64,000 bases of DNA, taken from the NCBI GenBank assembly GCA_038496445.1, contig JALMLS010000538.1:62001-126000 (forward strand), written 5' to 3'. The notes under the pieces are model-generated. The model did no database searches, was not told the DNA's origin, and saw nothing but the letters and a program-made list of their open reading frames with translations. Numbering within the stretch: the stretch's first letter is position 1; every line of letters begins with the position of its first letter. Of the stretch, positions 49,876 to 62,722 are shown piece by piece. The stretch comes from Trichosphaerium sp. ATCC 40318. Taxonomy: Eukaryota; Protista; Tubulinea. The translations under genes and the position numbers were made by a program.

Positions 49876-52800
49876 ATGCAATACTTGCGTAACATTGTTA
49901 TAAACAGGCACAGATTGAGCGTATTGCTGTCTGTAGCGACTGGAGTAATGAATATGCGTTTACTACGATACTGACTACAGTAGCTTTTCTTGTTTGTCTT
50001 ATGTATTACTTATTACCACCTTGATACAATTACGGTGCACGACAGCGATATTGCGAGTGTTTGTGTTGTACCACATAGCCACGTTGATCACGGATGGTTA
50101 AACACGATCGACGTGCGTCAAAAATATGGATCTAGACGTCATTTGGCGTTATGTTAACTCTGAACCATTATTGATTAAAACCCGTATTTTGTTACTAAAT
50201 TGCTATAGAAATACTACGAGACGCGTGTACAACAGATTCTATCTAAAGTCATACATCACCTGTACAAGAATCCAAAAAAGACGTTTGTATGGGGTAAATG
50301 CATCGTAGCGCGTGTGTACACCACTAACGTCTCGCATAGCCGAAGTATACTATTTTCGCAGGTGGTACACTGATAACAAGGACGTGGAGCTTGCTTGTAC
50401 GTCAATGCCTTATGCTGAACGCTAAACTAGTGATAATAGCTCAAATGACATACGGTGATTGTATTCATCAATTAATAAGCGAAAAGAGGTTCGAATTCGT
50501 TGGCGGCGGGTGGATACAGCACGATGAGGTACGATTTAGCTCTATTTGACAAAAAGAATAACGGTTTTGTGAAAGGCTTTAACGCCAGTACGCGCACAAC
50601 TTCTACAGATGAAAAAGGGTCTAGATTACTTAAAACAGGTACGTATTGTTTTATTAAATAATTACAAACGGAGAATTTTTGTTAACACGTTTTTTTTTAT
50701 CAAGACATTTGATGTTGATGTTAAGATTGCGTGCCAACATGACACTTTTGGTCATTCTGCTGTTACACCATGGGTATTCAAGCACCTCGGATTCGATTCA
50801 ATTGTAAGGGAGATAGTATTTATTTGGTTGTATCTGTTTAACGCATTAAGCTTTAGATACTTAACCGTATTGATTATAACTTAAAAAAGAAATTTGGTGA
50901 TATGAAGAGCAAAGAGTTCATGTGGATGGCAAATGACACTCACGGCATATTTGCTCATCTACTCAATGCTCATTATAATGTACCTGGATTAGATCTGGGT
51001 TATCCAAGTGCATCTGTCTGTAAGTAATGTAGAGCTATTACAAGTAGCTTTTGATGACAAGTATTTTTTTTTATCTGACTTTTTTTTCAAAAAGCTCTCG
51101 AAAGACTTAAAAAATACGCTGGGTTCATGGAAGCAGCTATCAAAGAGCGTATTGCAAATTATCCTACAAATAATGTATTGTTGTTTTGGTACGTGATAAA
51201 TAGCCGGCAAAAAATTAATTCGTTAAGTAAACAAATAGGGGTGATGATTTCCGCTTTACCAATCCTGATGCAAGTTTCAAAGAAATGGATGTTATCATGG
51301 ACTATGTCAATGAAAACACAAAATATAATGTTGAGTATTGCACTCTATCTACATACTTGGACAGAGTGAAGAAAGATAAACCCTTAGAAACCATGTATAA
51401 ATACTACGGTTCGTTGAATTCCATCTATTTTTTTTGCTAACTTTTTGTGTTGGAGGTGATTTTATGCCGTACACATCTGGGTTTAAAGATTTCTGGACAG
51501 GGTTTTATTCTCTTTATCCTACATTAAAAAAGAATATCATAGAGGTGTTTGACCTACTCGAAACAACCATGACTTTTAATGCTATCGTAACACTTCAGTC
51601 GAACGCCAACAATGATGATGAACTAGCCACAAATTTGGAGAAAGGTATTAAGAAAAAAATGAGAAAACCCAAGCCTTACGGTCCTCTGTGTTAATGTGTT
51701 TTTCTTTAGTCAAAGGCAATGTATTAGTTCTTTTTCATCATGATACCATTACAGGGACTTCAAGATATGTTGCAATAAGGGACTACTTTAAGCGCATTGA
51801 GAGTGCGAAATCAATTTTGAAAAACACTTTTGTGTCAATCACAGAGTCTCTTGCTGAGACTAAAAATACTGATTTTGTTCGTCAAACAAATGGATCATTT
51901 GTTTTAACAGACAGTACAGTGAGGGAACCTAAAACAGTCATTTTTTACAACTCATTGGCTCAAATTCGTTCCGAAGTTGTTACTATTGATATTGAAGGAT
52001 TTGATGGCTATATCAAGGTGTCCACAAGTGGAAACAATATTGATTGCGTTATACAAGATAGTATCATACACAAGGGAAATCGCGAAGTGTCTTTTTCAGT
52101 CAGCATTGGACCAATCGGGTGCGTACTTTTTGCATTTGGAATTTTTAATCTGACTATCTTTCACCACTAGTTATACAAGCTACACCCTTACTTTTTCTTC
52201 AAAAAAAGTTTCTGGTCAATGTAAAGAGGCTTTAGTGAGTATAAACGATAAGGGAATTAATAACGCTGTTTATACAGTTGACTACTCCGCAAATAGTTTT
52301 AGTCTAAAAACGGACAAGGTAAACCTGGTTTTTTTTATTTTTCAGTCCGTCTGCCTTACCAATGTGAAAATTCTAGGTCCCCATTGCTTCTCAGAGTATA
52401 AGGAAATATAATTGTGCCACAAACAATCCATGGTTTTGCTCTGGACCTTATTTATTCCGAACAAACTTTCCATTGTTTGTTTGGCAATATTTTTATTTTG
52501 GTGATCTCATTGGATTTATTGTTTCTCTTATTGTCCTTTATAAGTATAGCCTATTTCCAAAAAGGTCCATCACTTCTTCTAGCTTATTGGCACTTATATT
52601 GGCTATTTTAATGTCAGTGATTATGTTCAACACTGAAATAAGCAATGACAACCCAACAGTAAGAACCTTCTATTATTAGCACCTTAATTGGTCTTTTTTT
52701 TCTTGTTGCGGAATCATCGCTCCCTGTTTTTAAACGTACTTATGGTATAATGCATACTCACAAGTGTGTGATATTCCGTTCAATACTGTCCGTTTTATAT

Positions 52801-54140
52801 TTGAACTTAATGTCCTTTAAAGATTAACTTTTTTTTTAGAATATTGGTGTTGGCTATGGTTTTGTGTTTGGTGTCATTATAACTTTAATATTGGGACCTT
52901 TCGGTTGGTTATTTGGTTCTATTGGTGTAGCACCTTTATTTGTACTGTTATATTTATTCTCACCTTCTCAAATTGCTTCACAACTGAATCCTACACAGTA
53001 CGAAACAAGAGTGATTTTAACTATAAAAATCACCTCTACCTTTGTTTTGATGAGAACTCACATGACTTCCTAGTACACAAACAATAAAAACAAATCTATA
53101 CCAGGATATATACACATTCTATAGCTCTCCAGATATCATACAACGAGTCAGAGTGCTTAAAGGTAAGATCAAAATAGAACACTTTTTCTTAGACTTACAA
53201 AAGTTAACAAAGGAAATGAACGGTTTGTTCAAGTTGACACTTGGCTTCATAATACAAAACCAGGAGAATTAGTTTCAAGATGGAGTATAAAAGACTCTTC
53301 TTTAAGTAATGGTAACACATTTAATCACAATGGCTTGTTTGAGGTGAGAATAGAGAGGAAGCATAGACTATAATATTTTCCTAACTATTTTACAAAGAAA
53401 CTTATCCCGCCTTACCAATACCTCAAGTTTGTACCAGGTAACTACCACCCACTGGTTTCTTATGTGAAGGTAATACCAATATTAATTGTGATACATGTCA
53501 CTATTATATTAACTTTATTTAGCTTGCTGGCTCTAGAGGCCACTTGGCGATAGTTGTTGATCAACCTATGGGAATGGGTTAGTTGGTTTTTTTTTGAAAT
53601 CAACAGTTATCTCCTTTAGATGATGTTGAGTTTATGCTTATATTATTACGTTTAGGTACACTTCCAAGAGGTGATATAGAGTTAATGATAGACCGTAATG
53701 TTACTTGTGATGATGAGAAAGGTATGGGCACAAAATGGCGTGAACAGGGACACTCAAGTGATAGTGAGCAAAACGATAGAGTTCATTTAAGATACTTTGT
53801 ATCCTGGATCCCTGAGCCTGCTGATAAAGATGTAATTCTACAGAAATCTATGCAAGCTCGTCATAGATTACACGCAACAAGTCTAAGCGGGCCGCCACTT
53901 GTAACAACAAGGTTTCAAGGTCTCAAAAAGTCATTTCCGCTCGGACGTGAAGTCAGTTTTTCAGTTGATAAAGAAGCAGATTCCGTTTCTCTTCAGTGTA
54001 TTAATGGTCACTATAATAATACCTTACAAGGGTGCGGTATTGACCAAAGTTATTTGAAATATAACGATAATGTAATAAAGAAAAAAAAAGGATATGGATG
54101 GGATAGCAGGATAGAAACGTACTTTGTAAAAAGAAAATAA
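49876..54140 (+). CDS. GH38 alpha-mannosidase (type II anchor) with internal multi-pass TM insertion
   Basis: VVPHSHVDHGWL, FEFVGGGWIQHDE, QHDTFGHS, GDFMPY..FWTGFYS..P, HHDTITGTS, FYNSLAQ.R, SGPYLFR, GNYHP and IELMIDR..DDEKGMG. Confidence 0.92.
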
Positions 54141-54411
54141 AAAAAAAGAGGAAAGTTCTAAAAGTAAAAAGTATTTTGAAATGTCAACAACATTCCATGA
54201 CAATAAAGACTAGCTCGACATGTCCACTTTCAAAGCTCCATTTTGCTATTGTAGTGGTTCTAGCACTTGAAGCTTTTTGTTTGGTACTTGTGGCCTACGT
54301 AAGCTTTTACAATAAAGAAGAAGTTTTAGTCATTGCACAAAAAGCCAAACCGGCATTAACTGTCAAATAGTAATGGATGTTTGTTTTTATTGTTTTGTGG
54401 ATTGTATGCTA

Positions 54412-56767
54412 TCATAGTGTCATATGACTTGATTTAAGCGTTAATACAAGCGTTGAAATTATTAATATCCAAGTATATGTAGTGAGTAGTAATGAAGATC
54501 CACAAGTCTCATCAGATTTTCTTTGAAACATGAATAAAGTTGTATATCTTGCAAACTCAATTTTCTCAGTCCTTGTCACTTCTGTGCATGCAGGAGCATC
54601 TGTAGAGAATGCTACTTCATCACATGCATCGTCAAGTAGAATTTTAACACTTGAAGACTATAATAAACAATAAGTGGATCAGCCGGGATCTAAACGTGAA
54701 AATCACGTGTTTTCAACAAAATTCAGCAAAATCTGTTTCCAAAAAAAAAAAGAATTTTTTTCAAAACTTACGTTTTGTGCAAGCTTTAACACAACATCAG
54801 TTCCATTAATACAACCTCCAATATCAAGGATTGAATCACCACTTCCCACTTTAATACTATTATCAGCAGTATCTACATTCAAATCGCCTGAACAAAAGGA
54901 ATAAATAAAAAAGAAAAAAAAAGAAAAAGAAAAGGCTATGTTCGTGTTAGTGTTCAAGTAACGGTAACTACGGAGAAATACAAAGAACAAGCGTAACATA
55001 CCTTCCACTCTGTTACTTCCCTGTAAGGTAAAAGTACCATCGATCGTGTTTGTCACTAAGGTGACACTCGTAGGGGTATTTGGTTGTGGTGTAGGATTAT
55101 TTGTTGTTGGAGTAGGCGTTGGTGGGGGAGCTAGTGTTGCTGGAGTCAACGTTGTTGGAGGAAGGGTCGTTGGAGGAACAGAAGTTGGGATGGCAGTTGG
55201 ATTAGATGGTGTTGGAATTTCAAACTCACAAAAAGTAGAAAAATTTCCAGAATTAACTCCTGATGAAGCACAATTATAGTCCGACCACTTACCGCTAGTA
55301 GACCTATTCCATAACATTAAGCGTTTGAACAAATTCGAGAACAAGGAAAAAAAGCAAGAGTCCTTGCACTGGTTTTTTCAAACTTCTTTTTTGATTCTGC
55401 ATACCTTAACATTGTACATCGTTCATTTACGTTTGAAGGTTCATTAGTATTCCAAGGCTCAGCTCCCATAGTTAGGTTACTACCAAACACAAAGGGTTCG
55501 TTGTCTGGGCTTGTTCTCTATTGGTCGTAATGTAAGCAAGTAAGTTTTGTTGATAGCATGATTGTATTCAAAAAAAACCACACAGTGTTAGTCCATAATG
55601 TCAGTTTTAATTTAAAAGAAATGCTTAGTTACTATGCATTTCTCTGATGTTGGAAGCAAACGCTTAAAATGTTCACATTAAAACGAGAAAAAAGTGCTCT
55701 TGGTTGAAAAAACCGGAAAAATATGAGATAAGCTGTTCAAGTCCATGTGATAAATCTATTTTGAAACAAAATCAAGAAATAATATTGTACGTACCCAGTT
55801 GAATTCAGCAGTTGGTTCAAACTGTGTTAGGCCAATAACAAGCCAATCACCAAAACCATCAGTGGTAATATTGACTATAGCAGCATTCTCTTCAGCAGAT
55901 GTTATAACAGCAACATATCCTCCTCGACGACGACACTCTAGCTCTGATCTGACTAACCCAGGCTCTTCAACAACAAAAGTAGAGTAACAATGACCTATAC
56001 GAAAATACTAAGAAACACTCAAACAGAGCAGAAACAGAAACAGAAACAAGGAAAAAAACCAAAAATATGCCATACCATTGTAAACTCCTGTTGTATCAGC
56101 ACCTCCTGTACAGTTATAAGAAGTTTGAATACACGAATCTAAAACAGTTGCGTCTGTGCTCGACTCACAAACAAAGTGAGTGACGTTTGTACAGTCATTG
56201 TCGAAGATACGCTACAAAGATAAATTTAGCAAACAAAAAAAAAAGGTACAAAACCCAAAGACTCCAATAAGCAAAAACATCAAACTGAGGTATTAACGTA
56301 CACCGTTACGGTATTCCGCACATGGAAATTCAGGAAGTTCCCATTCCTTGTAGAGTGAATCAAGAATGGGCGATTGGTCATACCACAATGTAGCATTGAA
56401 CAAGGACATGCGTATAGGCTGAAAGTCACTTAATAATCGAAACAACTAAAATAGGGGTTCGTCTATCTTAAAAAAACGTACAGGAAAGCTTGCCATTGCT
56501 ATAGCTTCTTCAAAGTCAAGTATTCTCAAGTGTTCGTAACCTTTTAATGCAAGTTTCAGTATAAACAGCGACAATTTGTTTTAAGCAATGATTACCTCCT
56601 GTACAAGCGTTTTCCCAGCCTTGTGGGTATTCTACAGTTGAGTTTGCGTTGTCATGCAATTGATAGTTTACATTGTTGTAGCTACACGTTGATACTATAC
56701 CTCCAAGCACATTATTACTTACGTACAGCACAAATAGTATTTTAAATGCAACTATTTTAGAAAACAT
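54412..56767 (-). CDS. cell-surface C-type-lectin-domain protein with Pro/Thr stalk and C-terminal hydrophobic (GPI/TM-like) end
   Basis: Signal peptide; CTLD GHCY..ECRRRGGYVAVITSAEEN..WLVIGL..WNTNEPS..ERC..GKWSDYNC..FCE; a preceding degenerate CTLD (DNDCTNVTHFVCE); PT-rich linker; terminal hydrophobic stretch. Confidence 0.8.
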
Positions 56768-61695: not shown

Positions 61696-62722
61696 ATGGC
61701 ATTAAACGGCGCCCAAGAGAAAGTTTTAGCTACACTCAACAAGAGTAGATACAGCCCAGAAATTATTGGCGACTTGGAGGCTCACATACAGCAACAAGCA
61801 GCTGAACAGTTTTACACATTTGAGGCAAACCATGCCCTCCTAAAATTGTACCAAATGTTTCCTGCTAAAGCGAACGCATCTACAATTGCCGTTATCCTCA
61901 CAAAAGCGCTAATGAACCTTCCCAACACTGATTTTATGCTTGGACTTTACATTATCTCCGATAAACTCGTATCCTGAACGTTTTGCGACGATTAATGAGA
62001 AAAAATCTTTATAATTTATCCTTAACGCTACAGCAAACCGATAGCAACATAGCTGCGCTCATCGATTTACACAACCTTCTAGAAAGTGCCAATTTCAAAG
62101 AGTTTTGGGCTAAACGCGCGTCAACTGAAGCCAGTGGTGTGATTGATGGTGTTAAAGGGTTTGATGACGCAATTAGAAGCTGTACGATTTTGTAATTTTA
62201 ATTTTTCACAAAATCTAACTACTGTCAGTTATTGTAAACGTACTCGCACGTACATACAAAACAGTACCTGTCCAAGCTATTTTAGATCAAACAAGTCTCC
62301 AGGTACATTAAATTACTAAACAACTCGTAAATACTCTCTGTCACTCATCTTGTGTTGTCAAAATGAGATTAGATGTCATCATGTTGACACTGAGCGTTTT
62401 AATAATTTTTGATTTACTATTTTTCTTTTTTTGACACTTTGACGCTTACTCTTTCTCTTAGAGAGATGCTCTTGAAGCTATGGCAAAAACAAATAGCTGG
62501 CAAATTGAAAGAGATGTTATTACATTCCCACAAGAAGTTACTGAACAAAACAAAGCGCCAGTCATCCCTCCTTTCGAGAGTACGTTTTATTCACTTTTAT
62601 TATTTTTCGAAATTTAACAATTGACTTGCATTCGTTTTCTTTGCTTTTTTGAACGTAGAAATATGGCAGTAGACCTCCAATATATTATTTTGGACTATAC
62701 TAGTCGTTATTCCTCCTTGTAA
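61696..62722 (+). CDS. EIF3K: eukaryotic translation initiation factor 3 subunit K
   Basis: RYSPEIIGDLEAHIQQQ..YTFEANHALLKLYQMFP..ILTKALMNLPNTDF, LLESANFKEFW and GFDDAIR..IVNVLARTY. Confidence 0.93.

Follow-up and report, generated by a model that had tools for sequence, protein, structure and literature searches.

To our knowledge, the GH38 mannosidases described so far fall into two groups: soluble enzymes of the lysosome, vacuole or cytosol, and enzymes held to the membrane by one N-terminal helix, such as Golgi mannosidase II. The lysosomal enzymes of the MAN2B1 type, exemplified by bovine 1O7D, jack bean 6B9P and ManA of Dictyostelium, are in all cases known to us soluble proteins of the lumen or vacuole. 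Here we describe a GH38 alpha-mannosidase gene of the lysosomal type from the marine amoeba Trichosphaerium sp. ATCC 40318. The gene lies on contig JALMLS010000538.1 (GenBank assembly GCA_038496445.1), of which we analyzed a window of 64,000 nucleotides (nt), positions 62,001 to 126,000 of the forward strand; all positions given below are those of this window. We suggest that the mRNA encodes a lysosomal-type mannosidase with four membrane helices inside its C-terminal beta-domain, and that the enzyme is thereby tethered to the membrane from within its own fold. From the sequence evidence discussed below, we put the probability of this reading at roughly 0.6.

The gene resembles the MAN2B1 type in most respects. 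It shares the GH38 catalytic domain with the motifs HxHxD, (H/I)D(P/T)FGHS and HHD, a signal-type N-terminus in front of this domain, a middle region that aligns with 1o7d chain C, and the C-terminal motifs SG(A/P)Y(I/L)FR, GNY(Y/H)P and ELM(V/I)(H/D)R. It differs in that, in the four-helix model, approximately 114 residues with four hydrophobic segments follow the SGPYLFR strand, an insert not known from the lysosomal enzymes. Golgi alpha-mannosidase II, a type II membrane protein, is likewise a membrane bound GH38 enzyme with a lumenal catalytic domain. It is however held by a single N-terminal signal anchor and a stem, and not by helices within the fold.

The proposed insert follows the SGPYLFR strand and precedes the LYQDIY strand. 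In brief, the inserted residues would be supplied by the 3' two-thirds of exon X1 and by the whole of exon X2', and would enter a loop of the C-terminal beta-domain; exon X3 then returns to GH38 sequence (Table 1). The insert part of exon X1 encodes helix 1, a basic loop, helix 2 and the beginning of an acidic loop. All three junctions of this exon path are compatible in phase. We placed the insertion site by comparison with the mammalian lysosomal mannosidase, in which the SGPYLFR and LYQDIY strands are presumably about 20 residues apart and neighbours in the C-terminal beta-domain. The exons are of a shortness and divergence that kept tool alignments to solved structures from confirming the site.

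An initial annotation of this DNA had reported the SGPYLFR motif, four hydrophobic segments after it and a subsequent return to GH38 sequence, and we find all of these where it had put them (Table 1). The GH38-like reading resumes from 53075 as TQTIKTNLYQDIYTFYSS... and continues to GNYHP (53437-53451) and ELMIDR (53679-53696). The same annotation had taken the motif and all four helices to be one continuous open frame, and this has to be corrected. Only helices 1 and 2 share that frame, which runs six codons past the GTAAGA donor (52659) before it stops at a TAG at 52677-52679. The +1 frame encodes helices 3 and 4, which can be joined only by splicing 52658 to 52840, and a second intron, 52998-53073, then has to lead back to the GH38 frame. 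The 181-nt intron that this requires ends with a T9 tract and an AG at 52839. Since a TGA at 53062-53064 interrupts the GH38 frame, 53074 is the sole acceptor that retains the conserved LYQ, and any model that keeps LYQ has to use it. A nested or antisense gene was also considered and dismissed, as there is no sizeable open reading frame (ORF) on the minus strand of 52440-53090.

Splice sites were scored with a weight matrix derived from this gene's 17 undisputed introns. The donor GTACGA at 52998 scores 5.2 and ranks first among the 41 GT sites in the stretch; GTAAGA at 52659 scores 4.8 and ranks third. Both are within the range of the undisputed donors, whose leave-one-out median is 5.9 (n = 17), and the hexamer GTACGA is used a second time at the undisputed intron beginning at 50529. 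The acceptor at 52840 scores 5.7. Exon 52840-52997 shows a three-base periodicity (chi-square p = 0.017) similar to that of 198-nt pieces of true exons of the gene (p = 0.008-0.027), and eight of its ten GG dinucleotides occupy codon positions 1-2. No periodicity is seen in the 181-nt intron (p = 0.83). We also shuffled 52461-53073 with dinucleotide composition preserved and looked for in-frame, stop-free paths that lead from the upstream exon to 53074. The rules were permissive: a path could contain at most two introns, every GTA or GTG counted as a donor, and every AG as an acceptor. Only 6 of 3000 shuffles kept at least the observed 356 nt in such a path.

The same DNA may instead be one unusually long T-rich intron, 52475-53073 (or 52479-53104), in which the hydrophobic frames are a by-product of the T-richness. 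The gene would then encode a soluble, signal-bearing GH38 enzyme of approximately 889 residues. The model that skips 52475-53073 is in frame and free of stops over its 889 codons, as is the four-helix model over its full length. Removal of the insert does however require an intron of 599 nt, whereas none of the 17 undisputed introns exceeds 96 nt (range 34-96 nt, median 53). The mean intron length in the published Trichosphaerium genome, which has a GC content of 37.7%, is 75.4 bp (PMC10521059); the GC content of the window and the short introns of the gene agree with these figures.

The two donors able to remove the whole insert also score low, with 1.5 for GTTTGT at 52475 and 0.4 for GTTTGG at 52479, no higher than the lowest-scoring real donors. 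Two undisputed donors, GTTCGT and GTTAGT, have a T at position +3, and use of GTTTGT is thus possible. Both candidate donors are covered by a predicted local RNA hairpin, which sits in coding sequence just past SGPYLFR. A fold of 52410-52492 reaches -20 kcal/mol (z = -3.1), a value matched by one of 200 shuffles. Other points against a single long intron are the exon-like periodicity of 52840-52997 and the rarity of an open in-phase path, found in only about 0.2% of the shuffles. Skipping the insert would furthermore leave just 12 residues from FR to LYQ. We take the corresponding distance in the mammalian lysosomal mannosidase to be about 20 residues, in which case the skip would lose the PLFV strand.

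Two repeats were observed where the disputed stretch begins and ends. Its two ends are linked by an inverted repeat of 14 nt (complementary at 12 of 14 positions; 52467-52480 and 53077-53090), and a 10-nt exact direct repeat, CACAAACAAT, is found just outside, at 52418-52427 and 53076-53085. In DNA this rich in AT, both could have arisen by chance; alternatively, a weak donor could be brought near the acceptor 53074 by the inverted repeat.

Several observations weigh against the four-helix insert, and most of these would suit the single long intron. The first half of the insert (52461-52658) has no significant periodicity (p = 0.35). The T content is nearly uniform, 41% and 45% in the insert exons against 44% in the intron between them, and the other introns of the gene are similarly T-rich; other frames of the same DNA also translate to hydrophobic peptides. 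Hydrophobicity alone is for these reasons not evidence for the insert. Base composition was dropped as a discriminator, the insert exons being as T-rich as introns. Codon usage and synonymous-codon log-odds, trained on the 37 long ORFs of the window, were dropped as uninformative, and synonymous-codon scoring barely separates even the true exons of the gene from its introns. The acceptor at 53074 (CCTAG) is weak, with a score of -0.7, and helix 1 is a borderline helix (1.59) with an Asp within it. A listing of RNA runs for 50000-54200 was empty. It should be noted that the case was picked from a whole-genome scan, and a chance of 0.002 per long intron could give a few such cases genome-wide.

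The searches for relatives of the insert also count against it. Word searches with 52377-52658 and 52840-53067 found no relative. A phmmer search with 52377-52658 against 1.84 billion representative proteins returned only a spurious repeat protein, P0001, and neither two JGI metagenome scans nor the ESM Atlas contained a relative of the insert exons. GH38 homologues carrying the same insert, proposed earlier as a check, were thus not found in the word, phmmer, metagenome or Atlas searches. A control search with the last exon of the gene gave nothing either. This indicates that the collections do not hold this gene, and the blank results for the insert are therefore silent on its expression; they suggest that the insert is lineage-specific. 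We rejected a mobile element as its origin, as the insert is single-copy in the window and has no convincing terminal repeats. Full-text searches of the literature did not find a GH38 enzyme with internal membrane helices. Weighing both sides, we regard the single long intron as unlikely, but as an explanation to be taken seriously. If it holds, the gene is an ordinary lysosomal-type mannosidase without further interest.

The insert may also be used in part or alternatively. Several partial-insert paths are in frame and free of stops, for example one in which the good donor 52659 is joined to an acceptor at 53105 across one intron of 446 nt, which keeps helices 1 and 2 only. A splice from 52479 to 52840 would keep helices 3 and 4 only, and tethered and soluble isoforms might be mixed. 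With two helices, as with four, both halves of the enzyme stay on the same membrane side. Helix 1 is moreover weak, and the periodicity favours the second insert exon over the first. Compared to the four-helix path, these paths have weaker sites or longer introns, and the splice from 52659 to 53105 loses the conserved LYQ. In a genome of short introns, we would expect the nearest good donor-acceptor pairs to be used, that is the 181-nt and 76-nt introns. Partial or alternative use is rather improbable in our judgement.

If the four-helix path is used, a topology can be predicted for the product. Hydropathy was calculated as simple Kyte-Doolittle averages in windows of 19 residues. The second of the four segments is the strongest, with a summed insertion energy estimated at about -1.6 kcal/mol. 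A GPFG links helices 3 and 4, both of which are rich in glycine and show spacings of the GxxxG type. The charge is +3 in the loop that joins helices 1 and 2, and -2 (E, D) in the one that joins helices 2 and 3. As the number of helices is even, both halves of the enzyme would be on the same side of the membrane, and the loop charges fit the positive-inside rule for a predicted lumenal location of both. This is the polytopic enzyme with lumenal halves that the initial annotation had proposed. The best splice model does contain four helices with fitting charges, and we keep the topology as a candidate; the support consists of sequence statistics, a model without the insert is also stop-free, and helix 1 is borderline. 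The accompanying idea, that the enzyme acts on glycans linked to glycosylphosphatidylinositol or dolichol, is unsupported.

We suggest the following route for the four-helix product. The N-terminal signal or anchor would bring the catalytic domain into the lumen of the endoplasmic reticulum, where helix 1 would act as a stop-transfer sequence. The K/K/R loop would remain cytosolic, helix 2 would resume translocation, and the short acidic loop between helices 2 and 3 would be lumenal. Helices 3 and 4 would form a tight glycine-rich hairpin, the insert as a whole thus being two helical hairpins with four membrane helices. The final approximately 280 residues would then cross the membrane and pack onto the remainder of the enzyme. 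The outcome would be an active acid mannosidase that its back domain holds flat on the membrane, on the lumenal or outer face, instead of being free in the lumen. For a phagotrophic amoeba, the benefit may be that the enzyme is retained on the phagolysosomal or surface membrane.

Should the mature mRNA contain the insert, no earlier GH38 mannosidase anchored by helices inside its fold would precede this one, as far as we know and as far as the searched literature goes. Nature would here have tested whether a beta-sandwich domain can accommodate four inserted membrane helices, with membrane hairpins nested in a soluble fold. It would also point to a simple source of new membrane helices, namely T-rich intron sequence recruited as an exon. 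More generally, we speculate, with more doubt than confidence, that this amoeba lineage turns soluble lumenal glycosidases into polytopic proteins by even-numbered helix inserts in beta-hairpin loops, and that such inserts may come from exonised T-rich introns, whose sequence translates straight into hydrophobic helices. Membrane tethering would then have been reached repeatedly by a route particular to this lineage.

The assignment to GH38 does not depend on the insert. The exon model was built by reading the DNA and its three frames, and similarity searches were run exon by exon; the joined exons were used for the frame check and the hydropathy windows. The resulting model of 20 exons has GT-AG borders at every intron and, by a scripted frame check, 1003 codons with no internal stop. 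Five exons match PF01074 (Glyco_hydro_38N) colinearly, at profile positions 2-19, 66-87, 109-140, 154-181 and 216-257 of 270. Their scores are 19.7, 19.9, 22.7, 15.2 and 14.1 bits, each below the 25-bit cut-off, and the sum of 91.6 bits is a plain addition over separately scanned exons. Exon 51710-52118 aligns to bovine lysosomal alpha-mannosidase, 1o7d_C, over 137 residues (E = 0.0049), and also matches the jack bean mannosidase 6b9p. The PDB matches obtained are thus of the lysosomal and plant type, and not of Golgi mannosidase II. The middle helical domain, PF09261, gives a weak match of 17.1 bits, where the cut-off is 31.1 (profile positions 52-88 of 96, E = 0.0059).

The signal-type N-terminus adjoins the catalytic domain directly. 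The motifs HSHVDHGW, QHDTFGHS and HHDTITGTS, to whose residues we assign the catalytic and metal-binding roles that we take to be general in GH38, are intact, as is GDDFRF. Judged by its sequence, the gene therefore encodes an alpha-mannosidase of family GH38 whose catalytic motifs are preserved. The accessible supplementary data to the published Trichosphaerium genome list mannosidases of GH47 only (PMC10521059).

The C-terminal exons are highly divergent. Exon-level Pfam and PDB searches with 52377-52658, 53075-53164, 53215-53343 and 53634-54140 gave no GH38 match to the C-terminal beta-domain, PF07748. The motifs SGPYLFR, GNYHP and ELMIDR, presumably signatures of the GH38 C-terminal domain (the first in the general form SG(A/P)Y(I/L)FR), are nevertheless present in the expected order. 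The divergence and the missing matches would also suit a silent or decaying paralogue, whose insert is functionless whether spliced in or not, and so would the existence of other GH38 genes in the genome and the empty RNA-run listing over the 4.2-kb gene stretch. We consider such decay very improbable, since all 20 of the 20 exons are open, the introns are all GT-AG and the catalytic motifs are intact; an empty RNA-run listing is moreover no proof of silence.

Table 1 Positions of the features of the mannosidase gene and its insert region in the window
Feature	Position	Strand	Description
GH38 (lysosomal-type) alpha-mannosidase gene	49876-54140	+	20 exons, ATG to TAA
Probable N-terminal signal peptide or signal anchor	49876-50016	+	basic start, then approximately 23 hydrophobic residues; from translation
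Intron splitting the signal segment, 39 nt	49945-49983	+	inferred
HSHVDHGW, GH38 metal-binding His/Asp motif	50074-50097	+	inside PF01074 match, profile 2-19
QHDTFGHS, counterpart of nucleophile-Asp motif (I/H)DPFGHS	50735-50758	+	inside PF01074 match, profile 109-140
HHDTITGTS, metal-ligand motif HHD(A)xxGT	51736-51762	+	aligned to HHDAVSGTS of bovine 1o7d_C
Exon X1	52377-52658	+	28 GH38 residues, the last being SGPYLFR, followed by 66 residues of the insert; GTAAGA donor in phase 0
SGPYLFR motif	52440-52460	+	encoded in exon X1
Predicted local RNA hairpin	52454-52487	+	52457-52466 pairs with 52475-52484, 8-nt loop; inverted repeat and fold
Hydrophobic segment 1	52476-52541	+	22 residues, aromatic-rich, one Asp; Kyte-Doolittle 1.59, borderline membrane helix
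Loop 1-2	52542-52583	+	K, K, R and zero acidic residues; predicted cytosolic
Hydrophobic segment 2	52584-52628	+	strongest of the four; Kyte-Doolittle 2.35
Intron, 181 nt	52659-52839	+	GTAAGA...TTTTTTTTTAG; phase 0; stops in all three frames (3, 3, 5)
Exon X2', 158 nt	52840-52997	+	glycine-rich helices 3 and 4 joined by GPFG, then 12-residue polar tail
Hydrophobic segment 3	52843-52893	+	Kyte-Doolittle 2.09
Hydrophobic segment 4	52906-52959	+	Kyte-Doolittle 1.91
Intron, 76 nt	52998-53073	+	GTACGA...CCTAG; splice-site scoring and frame check
Exon X3	53074-53162	+	GH38 C-terminal sequence regained (TQTIKTNLYQDIYTFYSSPDIIQRVRVLK)
C-terminal exons with GNYHP and ELMIDR	53213-53343, 53398-53469, 53523-53577, 53656-54140	+	frame reading

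A few minor observations concern the exon borders and the surroundings of the gene. At two introns, a second AG is found 9 nt downstream of the chosen acceptor (50430/50439 and 52170/52179), in frame in both cases, and these are possible alternative acceptors differing by three codons. Beyond the GTGAGA donor at 53344, the frame continues over 53344-53376 as EVRIERKHR and then reaches a TAA, with no GT donor after it. We take this peptide to be similar to the E(I/L)xERRRxYR found at the same place in lysosomal mannosidases; the exon may once have been longer and have left this remnant. Downstream of the gene, an ORF of 64 codons with one clear hydrophobic helix (54176-54370, plus strand) begins 36 nt past the mannosidase stop, and is either a separate small gene or a chance reading. 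On the minus strand directly downstream of the mannosidase gene, 54703-55344 is an ORF of 213 codons with a Thr/Pro-rich, mucin-like run, located in a patch of raised GC (0.42) with a strong GC skew.

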